From: Bugula neritina
Taxonomy: Eukaryota > Animalia > Bryozoa
Direction: 5' to 3'
Assembly (NCBI GenBank): GCA_964035545.1
Contig: OZ037768.1
Coordinates: forward strand, 7,410,741 to 7,474,740
Length of the DNA stretch: 64,000 nucleotides
Positions 10,583 through 61,559 of this stretch are shown one piece after another. The translations under genes were made by a program, and so were the position numbers. How positions within the stretch are numbered: position 1 is the stretch's first letter; each line of letters begins with the position of its first letter. The notes beneath the pieces are model-generated. The model saw nothing but the letters and a program-made list of their open reading frames with translations, was not told where the DNA came from and searched no databases.

Positions 10583-11248
10583 ATGGATCTAGATTCAAAT
10601 TACTTCTCAAACACTGCACTCAACTTCGATTTTACAAGCACAAAGGTATGGCTCTGCTACAATAGTTTATTATTTTTAGACAATTACTTTCTTGCCATGT
10701 GCTACTGTCAATGTCAATGATAGGTCTTATGTATACCTTGCAGTGGTGTCAAGTTTGACATTTCATGTTTGAAACATTCAGTTTGAATTGTAGACATTAA
10801 AACTTACAGCTTAAAAGCTTACAAATTATCTGAATTGCTAGCTGCTGTCTGAGTTTCCAATGTCCAAGTGACATGTAAATGAGTAAGTATGAATTATGTC
10901 TTTTTACTACAGATTGACACACAACAGCAAGCACTGTCTACATCTGCTACCAAACCTGGTTCTGTAGACTCAAGTCCTGTTTGCCCAGATAAAGACGACT
11001 TGCGGACACAACTGTTGGAAATAGATATGGATTTTCTCACATCCATGTTTGGTGATGAAGTGCCAAACAACACAGGAAAGCTACTTCATGTCAAGTCTGA
11101 GCCTGTTAACTACGACAGCTACTGTAACTCCTCAGTCAGTGAGTTGCCCCCTGATATCGACGTGAAGCTTGAACATACTTTCCCAGATATTCCAAAATAT
11201 GCTCAAGACTGTCAGCTGCAACAGATCCAATTACAACATCACCATCAG

Positions 11249-11283
<35 letters not shown>

Positions 11284-12121
11284 GCAGCAAAAGACGCAGC
11301 AAGACAGTCGACATCATATAGCCCAACCACATTTAGTTCAGCATCAAAGTCAGCAAAGACATCAATTGCATCATCAGCAATCATCCCAGCAGCACCAAAG
11401 GTTCAGAATGAGACTTGATCTTCAGATGCAGATGCCAGTTTCACAGTCAGCTCACAGTACCGGACCACACACGGCTCCCGTCATGATGTCTAACAGTCAC
11501 AGTCCAACTAACAATGGATATCTGACGGCTTACAGCGCGACCTCTCACCAACGGCATCTTGCACAATACCAGCCGACAGTGCAGTCTCCATCTGATCTGT
11601 ATGAAATTCAGCAGCATCAACAACAAACCAACATCCCTCCACCTCCACCTCTACACCAGAATGTTCCATACCCACAATTTGTACAGCAACAAATGCAAGC
11701 TTACCACCAAAACCAGATGCAGCAGTATCACCAACAAGCCATTCCATCAGTTGGAATTGTTACTCCACCAAATTCACCTCCCTTTTACATGCATAGCGTG
11801 TCTGTAGATACAGCATTGCCAAGAAAGCGTGGTCGCCGAGCCTGGGCTCATAAGAAAGTTGTTGTTCACCCTTGTCCCCATAAAGGATGCGGCAAGCAGT
11901 ATAGTAAATCATCACATTTAAAGGCACATTTACGTACACACACTGGAGAAAAGCCGTACGTGTGCAGTCATCCTACATGTACATGGAGATTTGCTAGATC
12001 TGACGAACTTACTAGGCATTTCCGAAAGCATACTGGTGACAGGCCATTTAAATGCACTCTGTGTGAAAGGGCGTTTAGTCGAAGTGACCATTTGAGTTTG
12101 CACATGAAGCGACATAACTAA
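10583..12121 (+). CDS. KLF2/4: Kruppel-like factor, KLF1/2/4 subgroup; exons 10583-10645 and 10913-12121
   Basis: Three C-terminal C2H2 fingers ([47 protein letters not shown]) preceded by basic RKRGRRAW, similar to KLF2/4 KRGRRSW. A phase-0 GT-AG intron at 10646-10912 joins [21 protein letters not shown] to IDTQQ. The N-terminus may extend upstream via the acceptor at 10578-10579. Confidence 0.9.
11246..11290 (+). repeat. Coding CAG/CAA repeat (15 Gln) in KLF
   Basis: Mixed CAG/CAA codons translate as an uninterrupted Q15 within a Q/H-rich region. Confidence 0.95.
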
Positions 12122-24665: not shown

Positions 24666-25872
24666 TCATCTCATCTCATCTCATCTAATTAATCTCACTC
24701 GGAGCGCTTTGGCTCCTTTATCGAGATGCAGTGGTGTATGAACAATTGTTTAGATTATCAGTAGTAAGGAAGAAAACTATTTTGTCTACGAGATAAGAAT
24801 ATAGTTAATTATGCTTCGATTCAAAGCTCAATAGCTAGCTACTGCCAGGAGAGAAAGAAAAAAAGAGAAAAAAAAAAAAAAAAAGTAAATAAATAAATAG
24901 ATATACACCGCACAGCTTCAGATGATATAAAGCAGAGTCGGTGTTAAGTGCTTATAATCAGTTAGGCAAAGCAGCTAGAATCATTAGAAAAGTTTATGTA
25001 TGCGATGTTTATATGAATGTTTGGCAGTTTTGGTATTGATATTGCCCTTAATAGCACCATGTCTGGTATTGTGAGACTCTGCAAAATGAAGGGAGAACCG
25101 GTCTTGGTCTATAGCGGCACTACCAGAAAGCATACGAAAGTACATTTTTTGGTCTGCATTGTCACGTCTTTGTGCAAGGCTATCCCAATTAGAATTTGTC
25201 ATGAGCTCAGTTATATGATTTCGTTTTCTCTTACAGAATGTCCACCTGAAGGCTTTTCTATTTATACCTTCTATGATGTTGATGTTTTTCAATTTAAATG
25301 GAGACCAGGTGTGGGTCGCAAATTCTAGTATAGGGCGACAGACTGTTTTATAAGCTATGGCTCTGGTTTTACTTTTAGCCTTTTTTAGACAGCGCATCAG
25401 CATGTGTAATAATTTATTAGCTTTTGAGCAAATGTTTATTATATGTTGATCGAATGACAGTTTATTATCAATCGTGACACCAAGGTATAATACTTTGTCA
25501 ACACATTGTAAGGGGTCATTATTCATGCTGTATTGAGACACTAGAGGATTTACAGTGGAGCGTTGAATTGTCATATGCTCACATTTATTTATATTGAACT
25601 TCATCTGAGAACTGTCTGCCCAAGTTATAAGATGGTCTAAGTCATTCTGAAATAAACTAGAATCAGCAGGTGTTGTGATTGGTTTGTACAACAAGGAATC
25701 ATCTGCATATAGTTTAAGCTTGCTGTTGGCTACCGCAGAGTGCATGTCATTTATGTACACATTAAATAACAATGGTCCTAATACACTGCCTTGGGGCACT
25801 CCTGAGGTCACATGTCTAGTGGCCGATTTGACGTTGTTGACACAGACTGAAAGAAGACGGTTCTGAATATTG
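24666..25872 (-). mobile_element. 5'-truncated non-LTR retrotransposon (CR1/L2-like) with partial RT ORF
   Basis: ORF 24984-25904 carries VTSGVPQGSVLGPLLF, LYADD and YLGV RT motifs but lacks the N-terminal RT and endonuclease. The 3' UTR ends in a (GATGA)4 tail at 24666-24685. Confidence 0.85.
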
Positions 25873-28800
25873 TTATGGTAAAACAAATGATGATAATATA
25901 ACAACTTTCATCGCAGTTATATTTACAATCCATATATTACAATTTTAGCTATAGTTTTATTGTTCGGATCAAACTTATTAAGCAGTATAATTTAATGATT
26001 CAATCCTTCAATGATTTAATTTTATGATTTAAATCAAAATTAGTGGTTATCAAAATGAGTATGTAAATAATAATATAAATATGAATATCAAATTAAAAAA
26101 ACTAAGACAATATTGATTTCGAAATCAACATAAATAACTACAACTATTACATACTATAACTTAAAGTTAAACTACAAGTATTAGTAAACGACTAAGTAGC
26201 AGTACAAGTACAACTACAAGTAATTATGTCTATAAGTAGAACCGAAAGTCAATATAAATATGAACACCACCATAACATTAACCCAATCAGTATCCATATG
26301 ACTATGAGTATAAGTATAAGCAAAACTGTAATTTTAAAAGAGGCCCGTACCGGTACTGCCCGTACACAGTCATGACTCACGAGTGACTACAGTTTACACA
26401 CTCACACTCAGTGCGAGTCTCACAAACTCAGAGCAGAAAATCTTTGAAAAATATCAATTATTTTTACTCGAGAACTGGCCTTTTCAACGTGATATGGCCG
26501 TAGACAATATGAAATATTAATAATAATAATACTTTATTAATACTAATAGTAATACTAATATTAATAGCCATAGTCATAGTCATAGTGAAATTGTACCAAA
26601 CTGAAACAAATTTACAATTTAAATTACATTTCAACTTTCAAGTATAAGTATCAGCATGAGTATGACTATGACTATGAGTATCAGTATGAGTATTACTATT
26701 TCTATTTGTAATATAATTATAAATAAAATTAAAAATAACTATAAGTAATTTACTAACTATGATAATGATAATAATAATAATAATGATAATGATTAAGTGA
26801 TAATGTACGAAATTCATATAATGATTTACTCATTTAACCAAAACTGCAAACAAATATTTGCAATCTTTAACTGTTCAAATATCTGCACGGGCATATAATA
26901 CTGAAAGTAGTAATAGAGGTAGACTCAGACTTATGCGTGGTAACTCATTAAAGTAAAAGTCATTATCATTAAATTTAATGATTATGATAACTCAATGTGA
27001 ACATGAATAATTTCATCTCTACAATTTAATACAGCTGTATTAAATTTCGACGCTATAATAAATTGGTGAACCGAAGATCCAGCAAGATATTTGGACAATT
27101 GAAAAACCTATAGCCCTATACATAATGTTACTCGCAAATGCTTATAATTGTTTTAGGAATTGGAGCTACAATTTTAATCTTAAATCGTATAAGCACAAAA
27201 TACATACTTGCAAAAAAAGTAAAACAAACAAAAAATTAAAATAAATAATTTTATAATATTTAATTTTTTAAACAAAAAAAAATTTTGAAATAGAAAAAAA
27301 AATTATTATTAGGAAGAAGTTATTTTAGAGCTTTTTTTCATTGCTAAGTAGGTCATGGCTGCCAAGCAAATTATATGCGTTTTTCTTCTTTGCCAAATTA
27401 TTTATGTAATTTCACAACAAATAGGAAGCGATGGTAGGTTTTATTTTATATTTTGATGAACCACTAACATAAAGTTGTTCAAGAAATCTTTAGTTGGATG
27501 AATGTAACAAATTTGTATCGCAGCAAGTGCAATCACAATGACAATGACTATACCAACACAGTCTGAGCCTTAGAGTTAGACTCAGATTGAGACTGAGTGA
27601 GTCACAGTGAGTGTGACACTGACAGTGTGAGACTGAGAGTGAGTGACTGAGAGTGAGTGACTGTAAGACTGAATGCGAGCTTCAGTTTCAGCATAGGTTG
27701 TCGTTGGTATTCCCTCGGCCTCTCACTCTCGAGTCTCGAGCTAAGTTTTAGTTCAATTTTCACTTCGATAATGAATATGATTATGATTATCAACGGATAA
27801 CTATAATACTAATACTAATAGTAATAGTTATACATATAGCAATATTAATAGTAATAGTGTCATAATTATCTAAGACTAATACTTACAATAATATATGGGT
27901 ATAGGTAACCGTAAGGCCAAATGCAGTGACAAGTACTAGTAGTGAAGTCGTTGAACTTGAAGTACTTACTCGAAGTCGGATAATAATGATTAAAAAAGTA
28001 CTTGCTCTGTGACTGTCTTCATCTTTAAATTTTCATTTTGCTTCTGCTTCAAATTGTATGAGTTGCGACTAGAAGTTGATTATCAGGCCAAAATGTTCAC
28101 ATGAGTTCCACAAAATGAGCTCGAGTAACTGCAAATTACGATAGCAAGGCGTTAACACACTCACAGAGACTTAGATTTCTCTTGCTGTTATAAAAAATAG
28201 AATTAGCATCAACCTTTGAGTTACTAGGCGGTCATTAGTCACACTCTATTTTTATAATGTCAGGTTTTTGTGTTGATTTTAAATGAATGTAGGCTTGTTT
28301 AATTTTAAATATATCAAGTTGATGAAGGTTATTTTATGTATTTGAAGTAGGGAAAATTGACATAGGAGCTCCAATATGTGAAGGTTATAAATCGCATAAT
28401 TTGTTTTAATAGATGCCATATTTAAGTGATGCAGTTGTTGGGATGCATTAGGCAACTAAGTCTGTTGTATAATTATTTTGAAAGTTTCTAGATTTTATTA
28501 ACATGCTTTAATAACACGCTATCAAAATAAATATAGGTACCCATTTTTAATTGGCTCTTAGTTTGATATCCAAATAGAAAATGAAAAACCTCGCTTCAAA
28601 TATTGATTTAATGTTGTTGAATAAATAGTAAATATTAAATAGATAGAATTTGTAAGCTAATAGGTATTTTAAAGGCAATGGTTGTTATAAGATTTAACAT
28701 GTTACACTTTTGATTTAATAAAAATGTAATAACAGTGTTGGCATTGATATTATTATAATACTAATATTAATAAAAGGCTAGCCTATATTAATACTATCTC

Positions 28801-49900: not shown

Positions 49901-52900
49901 TACCATTCTTAGAACTGAAATATGTAGATTATATACAGTCAGCTACTAAAATATTAGAAAATAAACAAACCAAAATTATTCTTCAATAATGTGCTTTGTA
50001 TTTTGATGATTTTTTGTTTTTGTTTGTTAATTTTAAATTACTTTTTTGCAGCTATACATAGTATTCACTATAACATAGCTGAAAGAATAAGTATTGCTCC
50101 CACAAAACTTCTATTATAAAACTATGTTGCTAAAACATAGTAGCCTACAAGTTTAAATATGAAAATTCAAAGCACAAGTACTCAAATATAATAATAGTTT
50201 GGCATGTCGCGGCATCACATACAATGCTATTGAAATAATTAAAAGGTATATTCATATTTATATTGTGTTTTACTGGTACAGTGCTCAAGTTTGTGAAGAA
50301 GTTGAACATCAAAGAGAAATATTCGAAAGATCCACCTCCAAGAAAATAGAGACAATGTGGCATTTTCTTGAAATCATCGACAGGGCTTTGATAGAATTGA
50401 AATCTGTTGATTCCAGGTATATACATTATATGGCATATTATTCCAGGTATATACATTATATGGCATATTATTCCAGGTATATACATTATATGGCACATTA
50501 TTCCAGGTATATACATTATATGGCATATTATTCCAGGTATATACATTATATGGCACATTATTCCAGGTATATACATTATATGGCATATTATTCCAGGTAT
50601 ATACATTATATGGCATATCATTCCAGGTATATATATTATATGGCACATTATTCCAGGTATATACATTATATGACACATTATTCCAGGTATATACATTATA
50701 TGGCATATTATTCCAGGTATATACATTATATGGCATATTATTCCAGGTATATATATTATATGGCACATTATTCCAGGTATATACATTATATGGCATATTA
50801 TTCCAGGTATATATATTATATGGCACATTATTCCAGGTATATACATTATATGGCACATTATTCCAGGTATATACATTATATGGCATATTATTCCAGGTAT
50901 ATACATTATATGGCATATCATCAGGTATATACATTATATGACACATTATCAGTAACAATAACAGCTGACATTTTCGTGGCAGATGCAAGTTTTCTTCTTT
51001 TTTTGAGCATTCACTTAAAAGAAAAGCAATAATGCAAAATAATGTAAATGAGCTAAAAATATTGAGTTATTTTGATTCTAGTTTTATACTTTTTTATAAG
51101 GTTTTTAAACTGTTAAATGAATATTAAGTAAATACCCAGTTCATATGGCAAGAGATTTTCGGTTGATGTTTGTGTGCTTATTACATGTTGACTAATAGAG
51201 TGCGGCGTAGAGTTGCCTGGATACTGGTAATGCTGTGCAGTTTTGTGAAGTCACCATTATAGCTAATGAGGATGAATGCTACACAAAGCACATTTAAAAC
51301 ACACTATATGATATATATTCAGAGCTGTGTAAATAATATAACTACTTAACCTAAGAACTAGACTTCTAATTATAAAACTTAATAAACAAAGGCTAATGAG
51401 ATATTAATAAAGGTATTTTTATGTGAATTTCAAATTATTAAACTTAATATGGTATTCACCATATTAATTTTTTAACAATTGCATATCTTATATGAGCTCT
51501 AAAGTACTAAAGAATTAGCAAGTAGAAAAAATTGAATTAACTTTCTTTGCATGCAGTTCGGCTTACTAATTTTTCTCAAATACCAACATATATATATATA
51601 ATATAACTTTCAGCCTATATTACATATATCTTTTAAGCCTGTGAACATGTTATTCAAGTATAACTTGAGACATATTATGCTTATAACAAAGAGCGAAGTG
51701 TCAGTAGACACCATGTCACACAAGTATAACTTAAAACATATTATGTGTTTTACAGAAGTCAAAACCTGCCTGACATTAGTCAACCAGTTCCTCCCCCAAA
51801 GTATGGTAAAAGTAGTGGTAGCTATGGCCAAGCGGCTGCAGAATCTAGCATTAGAGAACCCCAAACTAATCTTGCAAAGATGAACAGCTCCTCAATGGCA
51901 AATCTGTCATACTCAAATGAAACTCTGTTGATTGCGGGACATGCCAGAAGACGCCCTACCAACAATTCTAATAAACTTGGTAAACTTGGCAAACTGGAGA
52001 GAAGTAGAAGTGCACCATCATTGAATGGTGAGTAGATAAGATATGATGATTCTATAATGAATTATAAAATCCTTAATAGGTATTGATTTTGTTTGTCTTG
52101 CAAAGCTTTCACATTTTGAGACGGACACTCGCTGTTGTTGAGTGTTGAAATATAAATATGTATAAGATTTCATCTAGTAAAAATTGATCTATGTAATATT
52201 ATTTAAGCAAATTGATAAAACATAGCACACATATATATTCACGTGTATTTTAATTATGGAATGATATTGCTAATTAAGAATTTTCTCATAAGAATGTTAA
52301 TTATACATACAAATGCATATGGATGTGCAGGCACACATGCACTCGCTTGCGCGCGCGTGTATGCGCATGCATACGTGCATGAATGTGCGTGCATGTGTGT
52401 GTGTGCAAAACAAAATAGCTAAACTAATTGAAGTTACTCTGTTGTAGTAACTAGTGCTTTCATTATAAAAATCTGCAAACCTCATAAATTGCTATATTTG
52501 TTCAATTTGAGATGATATACTATCTCTTGCTAAGATAATAATAATTTCAGATATTCAGCTACACTGACTATTTTCTAGGTGTTGACAAAAGAAAGCATCT
52601 ACTTTCAACTCTTAAGTCAATGCCTACCACATCAACAGACATGGTTCAAACTACCATATTAACCATATAAATACCTAACTGCACATGTTCCCATTATAGA
52701 CGTGTATGCAGAAGTTATTTTTAACCTTGACTCTTACCCATTTACTACTAACATAATTAATATACTCTATGTTCCAATATAACAATAGCAACCTTATTAC
52801 TGAAATTATAAACTCCCGAGTGTCTAATATTTGTTGTAGGATTTGTTCCCCGCCCTCCTCCTACGGCACCGCCTTCACGTTCAAATGTTTACAGATCCTC

Positions 52901-56451: not shown

Positions 56452-59400
56452 TTAATCTTTCCAGCTTACAGATCCACCCTTTAGTAGGTACTCTAGTGCC
56501 TTGCTATATTCACCCATCTTCTTATATATAAGGCCAATATTGTTATAACTATTAGCAATGTTTGTTTGTGTAGCCTCAGTGCCATAGACAGCAAGATACA
56601 TCTCTAGTGACTTTGTGTGGTACTCTAGTGCCTTGCTATATTCACCAAAGTTGTAATACACACTACCAATATTATTGTAACCTGTTGCAATGTCTGCATG
56701 TGTAGCCTCAGTGCCATACACAGCCAGATACATATCTAGTGACTTTGTGAGGTACTCTAGGGCCCTGCTATATTTACCCATATTGCAATATACAAGACCA
56801 ATGTTGTTATAACTAGTAGCAATGTCTGCATGTGTAGCCTCAGTGCCATACACAGCTAGCCTCATTTCTAGTGACTTTGTGTAGTACTCTAGTGCCTTGC
56901 TGTATTCACTCATTTTCTTATATAAAAGACCAATATTGTTATAACTAGTAGCAATATCTGCATGTGTAGCCTCAGTGCCATACACAGCTAGCCTCATTTC
57001 TAGTGACTTCATGTAGTTTTCTAGTGCCTTGCGATCTTCACCCATGTCGTAATACACAAGACCAATATTGTCATAACTATTAGCAATGTCTCCATGTGTA
57101 GCCTCAGTGCCATAGACAGCCAGATGCCTCTGTAGTGACTTTGTGTGGTACTCTAGTGCCTTGCTATATTTGCCCATTTTGTAATACACAAGACCAATGT
57201 TGTTATAACTATTAGCAATACTTGGATGTGTAGCCTCAGTGCCATACACAGCCAGACACATCTCTAGTGACTTAGTATAGCACTTTAGTGCTTTGCTATA
57301 CTCGCCTATGCTGTCATGCACACGGCCAATACCATTGTAACTAGTTGCAATGCCTCTATGTGTAGCCTCAGTACCATAAACAGCCAGCTTCATTTCTAGT
57401 GACTTTGTGTAATGCTCTAGTGCTTTGCTATATTCACCCATGTTGCAATACACAAGACCAATATCATTGTAACTAGTTGCAATGTCTGCATGTGTAGCCT
57501 CAGTGCCATAAACAGCAAGCTTCATTTCTAGTGACTTTGTGTAGTACTCTAGTGCTTTGCTATATTCACCCATGTTGCAATACACAAGACCAATATCATT
57601 GTAACTAGCAGCAATACTAGCATGTGTAGCCTCAGTGCCATACACAGCTAGATACATTTCTAGTGACTTTGTGTAGTACTCTAGTGCCTGGCTGTATTCA
57701 CACATGTTGTAATGGACAAGGCCAATACTGGTGTAACTAGCAGCAATGTCTGCATGTGTAGCCTCAGTGCCATACACAGCTAGATACATTTCTAGTGATT
57801 TTGTGTAGTACTCTAGAGCCTTGCTGTATTCACCCATGTTGTAATACACATTACCCAGCTCACAATAAGCACTAGCCAGGTCCACATGATTTGTCTCCCC
57901 GTGCACTGCTCGAAACATGTCGCACGACATATTTATATACAGCAGAGACTGATCATAAAGGCACATCTCCTGATATACTCTGCCAACTCGAAGATAACAC
58001 GAAGCTACATTGGTATGAACACCTTCAGTTTCTCTACAAGCTTTTTCTACATTTAAGAGCAAAGCTTGAACACCTAGTTTGATGGAAAATTCCCCCATTT
58101 CCCCATGAAACTGTTCAAGTATTGGGGTTTCCTTAATCTTTAGAAAGTTCTTTATAGTCTTTTCTAAAGATAGTGTGTGATGTTTCAGTGCATCTTTCTT
58201 TTTTCCCATTCTGCTGTAAACTTTACCGTAAGCAGTATGTACGGCTGCTATGTCTATGTGGGTGGTCTTTCCTGTCGACTCCAGCATACTGAGAGCTGAG
58301 CTGAGAATTGACAAGGCTGTGTCATGGTCTTCCATACAGCTATGAAGAAGTGCAAGTTCTACTAATAGACCAGCCTGTTCATGTTTACTAACATCTAATC
58401 TTTCGAATGCGTGTATCACAATCTGGTAATTGCTTAATGCTGCTTGATAATTGGATCTTTTAGTTTCCAGAGCACCAACATCTCTATAGCACTGAGCAAC
58501 AGTCACATGATCAGTTGTAGGGTGCAGGCTCTCTGCCATAGACAAAGCTCTGTTATAGCAGTGAATAGACATCTCATAGTCCCCATTTTTTTCATAAATG
58601 TGCCCCAACCCTCTCAGTAATAGTGCAATGTCTGGGTGATCAACACAGTCAGTATGCAACTTTACTAACTCATTCTGGTAGTGATTTAAATACTCAATCC
58701 CTCGCTCATGTTCCCCTTTCTCTGAATGTATTAAAGCCAATGATACTACCATCTCAACATAATGACTATCAAGTTTCATGTCGCCATGACATGCTTGTAG
58801 TCTGTCAAACAATAAGATTGCAGCGTTGGCTAATTCTTCAGCCTGTACATAGTGTTTTGTGTTTTGACAGGCTTGACTGAGAACTCGGAAAGCTTGTGCC
58901 ATGATTTCAAACCAACGCAGATTTTCATCTGCAATTGCAGAGCTGGCAGACATCTTTTTCACAAATCTGTACAAGGTTTGCCTTTTATTTATACTAAACT
59001 TTGCTTTTAGAGTAGAATAAACGTCACCTAGTAGAGAAAATGCATCAGAATCGCTATGAAGTTTGTTAGCACAATCTGTGGCTAAAATCTTCCACTTCAA
59101 CTCATCAATTGAGGTTTCTCTAGATTCTTTTGTAAGCCATATAAAATATTGTATGGAAAGTTCGAAACTATGTGCAGAGTATAACAGATAAGCTGCTAAT
59201 TCTACATAACGTTTGGATGATTCTAATTCTTGCAGTCTGTAACTCTCATTCAATGGCGTTTGTGTTGAGCCAGTTTTTAAGTCTTCCTTGACTGTTTTCT
59301 TTACAATTTCTAGAAACACATCTGGCTCTTTGGCAAATATCCCTTCTCCACAGTTAGTTCTAATAGTTTTTATTGCCTGCTCATAGCAACCACAAAAATA

Positions 59401-61559
59401 CTCTATTTCTGCTTTCAGCATAAAAGATGGCTGCTGCTCACCTACATCCTTCAATAAGTGTTTTATCACATCATATTTGTCGGTTGAGTTCAGGTTAGCG
59501 AGTAAATCCAGATTTTTTGCAATGCACAGCTTCACCGGAACAATTGTGAATGCCATTAGAGTAAAAATATGGTGTGGTAAACTGTACACTTTTCTGTTGG
59601 ACCCTGTTCCGGGATACAAGGAAAACTCATCCTGTTGAGATTGTAACTGCAAACAAGCTACTGTTCTCGTATATATAGCTAGGGCTGACACTAAATTTAG
59701 TCTAAAGCATTGGCTTTCATCTAATATCCTCAAACTTTTCAGCTTTTCAGTTACTCCCCATGGAGTTGTTTCGGGATATCCTAAAAGCAGTCGGAGGTGA
59801 TCAACTAAAAGCGTTGGATACCGAAAAAGTATAGACTTTACTTTTAGTTTTGTGTTGTCTGGTGAACCAAATGACTCAAATCTGGGTAAAAAGTTGTACA
59901 TCTTTGCATCATTTTCAAGTACTTGCAACCTTTTTTGTATTAATGTCGTGCTTGATGTTTCCTCTATTAAGATCTTATGAAAATGTTCTGTTAAGGTTTT
60001 GAACAGTGTGTCACCATCTTTGTACGCCGTGACGAGGATGCAAGAAGACAGGAGATCACCAATATCTGCCGTGTTCCCAGCAGGTGACAATAAACCTTTC
60101 CTATACACATCGGCGAACTGTTCTACAGTCAAAATCAACTTCTTTGCACCATCACCTCTCCCAGTTGGAATATTTCCAGCCTTTTCTGAAATTCCATCAA
60201 TGTGAAACCCAACTGCTGCGTCATCATTGTACGTTTTATCTATCTCGGCAATATCAAAACATTTCAATGGAGATTCCTTCAGATTTCCAATCCTAAAATA
60301 GCTATCAACTGCCAGCTTAGTGAAGTAGTCACTGTGACTATCAGACTCAACAACAAAGGCATACTCCAGATCTGAGTATGGGGTGGCTGTACCACGGGCA
60401 ACTGAACCCAGAGCAACCACAGCAAATGAACAAGGAACCTCAAGACCTGACTTACTCAGAATATCAACACTTGACTGTATAATAGATTTACAGAATAGAA
60501 TAAAGTTTTCACTACACCTCTGACTGAGATGGAATACAGAATCAGAAAACAAAGACAGTTGATCCTTAGATGGTTTATTGTCAAGTTTCAGATGCTCTGT
60601 CTCAATAGAGTCAAAGTCAGTTTTACTTTCATTTCTGTAGCTTGTAAGTAGTTGTAGATGATTATTTGTCAGTTGTTGGTGTTCTTCATAGGTGAGTGGA
60701 TGCCTACCTTTGTACCAGATTTTTTCTATCTCATAGACTCTTCTTTGTCTGGTCTCTGTGAACTCTCTAGCTAGACATCTGTTGGCTAACCCATGTGCCT
60801 AAACAATAATTTAATACAGTCATAAGATAATATACTGAAATGCATTGGGCTCATTTCATAGTGTGCTATCTTAGTATCCGACCAATTTAAACTCCTTGAA
60901 TTTTCTGTTATTTATACCGCACAAAAGTTTACCGAACAAAGTTTAACAGGACTGATAAAATGATAAAATGTGATAAAATGTACTATTGTCCCTTTGACAA
61001 TTTCTTGATATTATGAGCATGTTCATTAACACAAATTTATTTATGTCAAGACATATACATATACGCACACTCGGACACATATACCAACTAAAACTTGTCA
61101 AATAGAGCTATGACATAGATACTGAGAACACTCAAATACTACATACTTGTATTGGTTTACTGTTCATCACTTGCACCTTTTAGCCTCATAATCATTACTA
61201 CACATGTCTACTGACTTATGCTCACTGCTACAGTCTATAAACTACTATGCATAAAACCTCCAGTTGATACTTTTGGTACTGGTAATAATATAATTACTCA
61301 AGATCAATACTAACATCAGCGTTGGTGCTGCCAACATGCTTTGCTATTGAAGAAACCTTAAAGTCTCAAAACAACACAACTCTGGAGGATAGAAAACATT
61401 TCATTGATCCATTCAAGCTATTGAAAAGTCAATGCATTCTACTAAAAATATTATATCATTTACCTTAAGATGGGTCACCCAATCATCGCTAAAAACCGCT
61501 TCTTTCTGGTATTTCTCTGTCAACTCATCCAACTTTAGAATATTCTGATAACTAGCCAT
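56452..61559 (-). CDS. Nucleotidyltransferase (DUF294/GlnD-GlnE-like) domain + TPR repeat protein, ~1480 aa; exons 61559-61464 and 60798-56452
   Basis: The frame is open from the acceptor at 60800-60799 through the 1366-aa ORF, and a 32-codon phase-0 exon upstream supplies the ATG. Motif FAVVALGSVARGTATPYSDLEYAFV fits the Pol-beta NTase hG[S]x9-13Dh[D/E]h signature. The C-terminal half is TPRs. Confidence 0.85.
56480..57867 (-). repeat. Coding tandem array of 132-bp (44-aa) TPR units, ~10.5 copies
   Basis: Consensus YNxIGLVYxxMGEYSKALEYxTKSLEMxLAVYGTEATHADIAxS; gcctcagtgcc recurs at 132-bp spacing (56573, 56705, ...). Confidence 0.95.

Follow-up and report, generated by a model that had tools for sequence, protein, structure and literature searches.

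A predicted GlnE/DrrA-class adenylyltransferase joined to tetratricopeptide repeats, and its expanded gene family in the bryozoan Bugula neritina

What would an animal do with a protein that joins an adenylyltransferase of a class treated as bacterial to a long array of tetratricopeptide repeats (TPRs)? The question is raised by a gene at 56452-61559, on the minus strand, of a 64,000-nt stretch of the Bugula neritina genome (assembly GCA_964035545.1, contig OZ037768.1, positions 7,410,741 to 7,474,740). We call this stretch the window and give positions in its own numbering unless another contig is named. An earlier reading of the letters alone (hereafter the original prediction) had proposed a nucleotidyltransferase (NTase) coupled to a TPR sensor with the architecture of an immune receptor. 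Here we report that the gene belongs to a bryozoan NTase-TPR family of at least 60 copies, built from a short 5' exon and a large exon that starts with AHGLAN.. and carries the NTase and the TPRs. In structural models, its N-terminal part of ~440 residues is a complete module of an adenylyltransferase of the GlnE/DrrA/DUF294 class.

The gene has two exons and encodes 1,480 amino acids (aa; 32 + 1,448 codons), in agreement with the ~1,480-aa protein first proposed. Contigs from X1 and X2, two runs of one sample that are labelled as RNA-Seq, cover the exon sequence with 95-99% identity and leave the intron and the flanks uncovered. One X2 contig bridges positions 60798 and 61465 with one mismatched base; that both runs represent RNA was deduced from how the library is labelled and from the absence of the intron. 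In Watersipora, annotated proteins begin with a homologue of exon 1 (W..YLQAHGIAN, against W.THLKAHGLAN in the window gene), and the Watersipora peptide continues directly into the ..AHG[IL]AN.. start of exon 2. The same start, AHGLANRC.., opens the large exon in nine of the nine paralogues fetched in full. The splice is therefore supported by the joining contig, by the Watersipora N-termini and by the shared exon-2 start of the paralogues: the gene is real and spliced, and it is probably transcribed. The X1 and X2 contigs differ by 1-5% from the window over 56452-60798, and 23 of the 39 listed differences are non-synonymous. Their source is probably another population or a sibling species, while a very recent paralogue may be a further candidate.

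No signal peptide was evident by eye in the 1,480-aa protein, which we took to be cytosolic. All searches and folds were run on exon 2 alone, exon 1 being translated only, and residue numbers follow exon 2. The parts of the gene are the following.

61464..61559, minus strand: exon 1, with the ATG at 61559, 32 codons, phase 0 and a GT donor after it (sequence and translation)
60799..61463, minus strand: intron of 665 nt, GT..AG, read from the sequence; zero depth in X1 and X2 and skipped by the spliced contig
56452..60798, minus strand: exon 2, a continuous open frame (1,448 codons and a stop) that carries all recognised domains
60451..60798, minus strand: N-terminal helical extension of the adenylyltransferase domain, residues 1-116 (model helices 15-28, 37-63 and 78-116)
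59959..60441, minus strand: NTase core of Pol-beta type, residues ~120-280 (Pfam DUF294; strands 125-130, 146-150 and 253-259)
60364..60408, minus strand: catalytic motif I, G131-S132-x10-D143-L-E145 (G-x11-D-x-E), GSVARGTATPYSDLE (alignment, genomic copies)
60160..60210, minus strand: motif G197-F-H-I-D201-G..G-N-I-P211-T-G213, with D201 as candidate third metal-binding carboxylate (conservation)
59479..59955, minus strand: residues 282-440, a helical lobe of the KNTase_C/DUF294_C/HEPN type in which K321, R326 and R378 are near-invariant (structural alignment)
58633..59478, minus strand: helical linker, residues ~441-722, no Pfam family; the modelled part, 441-499, is helical
57851..58632, minus strand: about six degenerate TPRs, residues ~723-982 (TPR_12, TPR_1 and SNAP-like matches)
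56488..57850, minus strand: array of 10.3 amplified TPR units of 44 aa (132 bp) (Tandem Repeats Finder, 84% matches)
56452..56454, minus strand: stop codon inside a TPR unit, the end of the open frame

The surrounding window is AT-rich, with a GC content of 29-40%. Bacterial contamination was ruled out by the position of this AT-rich window on the 24.8-Mb contig C4, by the confirmed spliceosomal intron and by the at least 60 paralogues on large contigs.

To which class of enzymes does the N-terminal part belong? In Pfam, DUF294 (PF03445) matched the open frame at 25.7 bits and its N-terminal 499 aa at 22.6 bits, against a cut-off of 21, with a match that spans only profile positions 41-91 of 138. 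SidM_N and NTP_transf_2 gave weak matches in the NTase core, and DUF294_C (PF10335) gave no match in this protein even at E 10. In NCBIfam, GlnD, MntA and ANT matched at the motif. All NCBIfam scores were far below the cut-offs, and the protein is therefore not an orthologue of GlnE or GlnD. A sequence search against the PDB returned DrrA/SidM alone, at E 0.2 with the single sequence and at E 4e-4 with a profile of 29 relatives; the profile alignment reaches only DrrA residues ~64-122 and 157-210. A divergent paralogue on contig C2 (L081, G000:C2:24501859-24505044), with a frame of 463 aa, scored 27.5 bits with Pfam SidM_N, for which the cut-off is 27.

We built two AlphaFold models of residues 1-499, from alignments of 29 relatives (predicted local distance difference test (pLDDT) 83.4, predicted template modelling score (pTM) 0.86) and of 55 relatives (pLDDT 87.2, pTM 0.90). 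Foldseek matched DrrA at E 3e-7 and both halves of GlnE at E 2e-6 to 1e-5, with no other match below 0.09. A VIA-align run against 48,161 representative chains, which was independent of Foldseek, ranked DrrA first (Z 25.8, 322 of 339 residues, root-mean-square deviation 4.1), followed by the N-terminal domain of GlnE (GlnE-N, Z 20.3) and its C-terminal domain (GlnE-C, Z 19.4); the next chains, isolated HEPN/KNTase_C domains and aminoglycoside NTases, reached Z 7.9 or less. The structural alignment to DrrA covers model residues 20-439 and thus includes the N-terminal helices. The helical lobe matches residues 209-391 of DrrA (Z 10.2) as well as HEPN/NTase substrate-binding domains (Z ~7.9). Its first helix, 320-339 of the model, is VKSILFRYPTLLVDHL, a helical segment that had been picked out from the letters. 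In an ESM Atlas fold search, the template modelling score was 0.81 to a eukaryotic DUF294-TPR cluster and 0.57-0.59, over residues 41-438, to bacterial proteins that combine CBS or cyclic-nucleotide-binding (cNMP) domains with DUF294 and DUF294_C.

The fold check proposed with the original prediction thus returned an NTase fold (pLDDT 87; DrrA Z 25.8, GlnE ~20). Its placement in the GlnD/GlnE/DUF294 branch of the Pol-beta fold was borne out as well, with DUF294 above its cut-off and DrrA and GlnE by far the best structural matches. The same text had also pointed to the fold of cGAS and OAS, and with it to second-messenger synthesis; this part fared worse. No cGAS, OAS or CD-NTase fold stood among the top 50 of the 48,161 chains in VIA-align, and CdnC (6P80) reached only E 0.63 and a probability of 0.12 in Foldseek. 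A cGAS/OAS-type reading was rejected on these fold comparisons: the fold is of the protein-AMPylase type, and messenger synthesis is the weaker option.

Is the predicted enzyme likely to be catalytically intact? The GS-x-DxE motif first read at 60408-60364, GSVARGTATPYSDLE, is encoded there exactly. This motif I shows no change in any of the 55 aligned relatives and is kept in 118 of 119 amphioxus proteins among the matches listed, and its G131, D143 and E145 align to G98, D110 and D112 of DrrA. Nine positions are invariant in the 55-sequence alignment (G131, S132, T139, P140, S142, D143, E145, G197 and P211); others are nearly so, with D201 and K321 kept in 53/55 and R326 and R378 in 52/55. 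D201 lies in the context G-[FY]-x-[FI]-D-G..[NK]-x-P-x-G and is the sole conserved acidic residue after motif I; in the better model this region has a beta-bridge at residue 200 and a pLDDT of ~66-68. We take D201 as the candidate third carboxylate, putatively equivalent to D150 in the list of DrrA catalytic residues (PMC8097203). A candidate for the third acidic residue on which the original prediction depended is present and conserved, both in 53 of the 55 relatives and in all 60 covering genomic copies. The G-S..D-x-E residues are kept together with the D of the second motif in 60/60 genomic copies that cover these sites, one of which has a P-to-L change inside the motif. For the enzyme domain, the ratio of non-synonymous to synonymous substitution rates (dN/dS) was 0.12-0.20 against the paralogues of this gene and 0.18-0.36 among recent duplicates, which indicates that this domain is under purifying selection. 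The conserved catalytic candidates and the low dN/dS therefore argue against a dead enzyme.

The second half of the protein is dominated by TPRs, with Pfam TPR_12 matching at E 1e-134 over 12 stretches. The arrangement first described, degenerate TPRs followed by about ten near-identical ones, stood with 10.3 units. Two of its details did not: the unit has 44 aa and not 42, and "near-identical" amounts to a mean pairwise amino-acid identity of ~76% among the units. The units of a given gene share a residue that differs between genes: TEATH is found in 9/10 units of the window gene and SEATH in every unit of five paralogues; one further paralogue has AEATH and one has SDAVH. The arrays were therefore amplified or homogenised within genes. 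To locate the differences among units, we numbered the unit on the TPR consensus (Y4, I7, G8, Y11, A20, Y24, S27, L32). Within the gene, variation peaks at TPR positions 2, 5, 9, 12 and 13, plus 24, 31 and one linker position. In TPR domains, positions 2, 5, 9, 12 and 13 lie on the concave face that contacts the ligand (PMC1261162), and this pattern identifies a putative binding face with different residues in different units.

The original prediction had further compared the protein with the logic of NLR/STAND receptors. No STAND or P-loop NTPase (NACHT, NB-ARC) was found by Pfam over the 1,366-aa open frame or in the linker. A hidden STAND NTPase between the NTase and the TPRs was rejected, and NLR membership with it, since Pfam on residues 500-983 gave TPR-type families only; what is left of this comparison is an architectural analogy. 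Four longer paralogues on contigs C6 and C5 (L035, L038, L042 and L043) carry a conserved C-terminal cap, ~250 aa of degenerate TPR-like helices ending in ..LYSTLTLYVDV. The window gene has no such cap, and its frame ends within a TPR unit.

How unusual is this gene within its own genome? The NTase domain has 68 matches in the 216-Mb genome, most of them intact and in tandem clusters. The clusters lie on C6 (0.39-1.0 and 2.9-3.15 Mb), on C5 (6.35-6.43, 11.78-11.82 and 15.1-16.2 Mb) and elsewhere on C2 (32.47-32.55 Mb), C7 (13.56-13.59 Mb) and C1 (28.58-28.60 Mb). The window gene, on contig C4, is a dispersed member whose nearest kin, at 71-72% identity, are on C6, C2 and C8. The open frames of full-length copies range from 861 to 2,267 aa, and the repeat number is variable. 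The count of paralogues and clusters suggested at the outset, 68 matches with tandem clusters, thus shows that the gene is not a single-copy housekeeping orthologue.

Outside Bugula, the named relatives of the window protein come from Watersipora subatra (34-39%), Branchiostoma (27%) and Neochlamydia sp. S13 (24%). The similar architectures that the original prediction had mentioned for some marine invertebrates and intracellular bacteria do exist, in Watersipora, Branchiostoma and Neochlamydia (PMC4209131). A search with an amphioxus protein gave 803 proteins at E 1e-3 or better, and all 120 of the 120 matches listed were from Branchiostoma. Many amphioxus relatives carry the automatic UniProt name [quoted passage not shown]. 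Two amphioxus proteins were verified as CARD (E 4e-12) + fn3 + DUF294 + TPR, and precomputed Pfam annotation lists DUF294_C (PF10335) for some of these relatives. The Neochlamydia protein P0022 combines F-box, DUF294, DUF294_C and TPR. It belongs to NEX2, a 50-member Neochlamydia family described among expanded families of eukaryote-like effectors (Domman et al. 2014, PMC4209131). Feature and fold searches of the ESM Atlas returned eukaryotic DUF294-TPR clusters, one Chlamydiota cluster and the bacterial CBS/cNMP-DUF294-DUF294_C proteins. In a quick maximum-likelihood tree, the bryozoan proteins formed one clade (support by the SH-like approximate likelihood ratio test, SH-aLRT, 100) and the amphioxus proteins a separate one (97). 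The bryozoan and amphioxus expansions are therefore lineage-specific. Neochlamydia fell beside the animal clades (grouping 97, placement unsettled), and the other bacterial relatives fell outside. No one-to-one orthologue across phyla was seen in the relative search and the quick tree.

Several of these relatives have other architectures. The precomputed Pfam annotation of two Branchiostoma proteins (P0120, P0024) records such variants among the amphioxus relatives: one carries DUF294 next to CUB, LDL-receptor class A and further domains of extracellular type, and one, 1,560 aa long, matches Polbeta, DUF294 and NTP_transf_2 and has no TPR. Two bacterial frames of ~730-750 aa (L031 and L032, on contigs of an uncultured bacterium and of a Chlamydiae metagenome-assembled genome, MAG) have the ..ATPYSDLE motif and a hydrophobic N-terminal segment, with no TPR array noted; judging from that segment, these proteins may be secreted. 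L033 (from a Pyrinomonadaceae MAG) and L034 (from a MAG) are stand-alone proteins of ~370-400 aa with N at the D201 position in the alignment.

Which known system does the protein resemble most? The best whole-module structural match is the adenylyltransferase (ATase) domain of DrrA/SidM from Legionella pneumophila (PDB 6YX5, 3NKU; Z 25.8). The two share the G-x11-D-x-[DE] motif with a ..T.YSDL[DE] string, the same N-terminal helices and the helical lobe. Their identity is only ~16%, however, and DrrA is a secreted bacterial effector in which the ATase is followed by guanine nucleotide exchange factor (GEF) and phosphatidylinositol 4-phosphate (PI4P)-binding domains, without TPRs, whereas the bryozoan protein is endogenous to the animal and belongs to a multigene family. 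Both domains of GlnE have the same fold (Z 19.4-20.3) and the same motif, and GlnD gave weak NCBIfam matches at the motif; unlike these enzymes, the present protein is eukaryotic, has a single NTase module and lacks the regulatory context of PII and glutamine synthetase. The bacterial proteins with cNMP-binding, CBS, DUF294 and DUF294_C domains resemble it in fusing a sensor domain to an NTase. Their sensor is N-terminal (cNMP, CBS), whereas the bryozoan protein has a C-terminal TPR array and no DUF294_C detected by Pfam; the bacterial proteins are themselves of unassigned function.

Neochlamydia NEX2 shares with the bryozoan protein the order DUF294-then-TPR, 22-24% identity in the NTase, the ..TPYSDLE motif and a large lineage-specific expansion. 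NEX2 proteins are bacterial, presumed effectors, and have an N-terminal F-box with or without OTU. Pfam found neither F-box nor OTU in the bryozoan protein, which, being without an F-box, is not a member of NEX2. The amphioxus proteins match it in their NTase + TPR architecture, in the motif and in a very large expansion, but form a separate clade at 17-24% identity to the window protein, with long N-terminal extensions and with CARD + fn3 in some. NLR/STAND receptors are alike in having an effector domain with C-terminal repeats, tandem clusters and lineage-specific expansion; the bryozoan protein differs in having no NACHT/NB-ARC NTPase. Fungal NLRs have highly conserved internal TPR, ANK or WD repeats, and the likeness here lies in near-identical repeats that vary at binding positions. 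FICD/HYPE also combines TPRs with a protein-AMPylating domain (PMC12409994), yet its Fic fold is unrelated, and it is single-copy, conserved and anchored in the endoplasmic reticulum, with two TPRs against ~16 here.

What, then, may the protein do? We lean, with moderate confidence, towards a protein AMP- or UMP-transferase that is targeted or gated by its TPRs and has a role in conflict. The enzyme would move AMP (or UMP, or another nucleoside monophosphate, NMP) from a nucleoside triphosphate onto a hydroxyl side chain of a protein. Protein nucleotidylation is suggested because all characterised members of the structural class do so. GlnD modifies a tyrosine of PII. GlnE modifies a tyrosine of glutamine synthetase, and DrrA modifies Tyr77 of Rab1 (PMC8097203, PMC12409994). 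The concave face of the TPRs would select the protein to be modified, or would bind a ligand that relieves autoinhibition. The family would serve in biological conflict, as innate immunity or as allorecognition in a colonial animal, rather than in housekeeping. We infer such a conflict or immune role, by analogy, because of the independent expansions, the tandem clusters, the variable repeats, the CARD fusions in amphioxus and the F-box/OTU fusions in an intracellular bacterium. A bolder form of this proposal seems doubtful to us, if possible: bryozoans and amphioxus would have independently built large sets of STAND-less receptor-effectors, in which diversifying TPRs sense a ligand (non-self, pathogen or allogeneic) with their concave face and so release a DrrA/GlnE-type AMPylase that modifies proteins of host or invader, in amphioxus also via CARD.

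Several points weigh against a TPR-guided transferase with a conflict role. No enzymatic activity, substrate or ligand is on record for DUF294 proteins or for the animal family. In the fold comparisons, the de-AMPylating GlnE-N matches the models as well as the AMP-adding GlnE-C, so that the fold leaves the direction of the reaction undecided. The equivalence of D201 with the third Asp of DrrA is putative and concerns a loop modelled at moderate confidence only. TPRs in general vary most at positions 2, 5, 9, 12 and 13; variation there therefore speaks for a binding face and not for positive selection. In the bryozoan proteins, Pfam found no STAND ATPase and neither a death-fold nor a TIR domain, and the immune reading is drawn from family-level analogy and from fusions in other lineages. 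As for the window copy itself, it may be truncated, and the evidence for its expression consists of contigs whose RNA nature follows from a label and which are 95-99% identical, not identical, to the window.

How do other explanations compare? The most serious is a regulatory or housekeeping AMPylase, whose TPRs recruit a fixed endogenous substrate and whose copies reflect subfunctionalisation, with no immune or allorecognition role. We regard it as rather unlikely. It can draw on FICD, whose TPRs recruit BiP in the same TPR-plus-AMPylase logic (PMC12409994), on the purifying selection indicated for the enzyme domain and on the bryozoan copies being without an immune-type domain. Nevertheless, a fixed substrate accords poorly with the 60 or more copies, which form tandem clusters and differ in repeat number, with independent expansions in bryozoans and amphioxus, and with repeats that are homogenised within genes and vary on the binding face. 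The amphioxus CARD fusions and the failure to see a one-to-one orthologue across phyla point the same way.

If the reaction instead ran in reverse, the enzyme would take nucleotidyl groups off proteins by phosphorolysis, as GlnE-N does, and could for instance undo AMPylation by bacterial effectors. We consider this improbable: although GlnE-N (Z 20.3) is tied with GlnE-C (Z 19.4), and the two GlnE domains are described as homologous (PMC12409994), DrrA, which AMPylates in the forward direction, is far ahead of both (Z 25.8), and no feature was found that separates the two directions. Lower still we place a pseudoenzyme, in which the NTase would be a dead scaffold or a nucleotide-binding switch in a TPR adaptor. 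The lack of any recorded activity for the family and the partial similarity to the DUF294 profile (positions 41-91 of 138) would fit a pseudoenzyme; but from a chlamydial bacterium to amphioxus to bryozoans there is no change at G131, S132, D143 and E145 and hardly any at D201, K321, R326 and R378, the acidic residues stand in 60/60 covering genomic copies, and dN/dS is ~0.15. Least probable of all is a sensor-coupled synthase of second messengers or oligonucleotides, akin to cGAS, OAS, CD-NTases or HalB and switched on by a ligand at the TPRs, for while the Pol-beta fold has an intact candidate acidic triad and HalB appears at Z 6.0, chains of CD-NTase or OAS type are not among the significant matches and both lobes follow the GlnE/DrrA arrangement over ~320 residues.

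Other features were noted elsewhere in the window. At 10889-12121, on the plus strand, an ATG-started frame of 410 aa ends in C2H2 zinc fingers (zf-H2C2_2, E 1e-10) and falls in the most GC-rich 2 kb of the window's first half. A 306-aa frame at 24984-25904, on the minus strand, matches the C-terminal half of RVT_1 (E 4e-16) and, from this match, is probably a retroelement fragment. At 50145-51032, three overlapping frames of 204-277 aa, on both strands, lie over a repeat.

What is new here is the recognition of the class and of its setting; the fold, the domain combination in databases and the DUF294-TPR proteins of Neochlamydia were already known. In the literature searched, we found no paper on animal DUF294-TPR proteins or on the amphioxus relatives, and Kaur et al. 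2021 make no mention of a DUF294-TPR family. Reviews of AMPylation name Fic (FICD) and SelO as the only animal AMPylases and treat the GlnE/DrrA class as bacterial (PMC8097203, PMC12409994). The present locus adds to that class, as modelled, an animal member that is intact, under constraint and probably transcribed. The link to NEX2 bears on the exchange of genes, in either direction, of animals with intracellular Chlamydiae. Should the enzymes be active, the family would be a third class of metazoan AMPylases or NMPylases. Its immune-like architecture offers a concrete and testable link between nucleotidylation and immunity or allorecognition in invertebrates, and if the receptor-effector reading is true, AMPylation would be an output of innate immunity or allorecognition.

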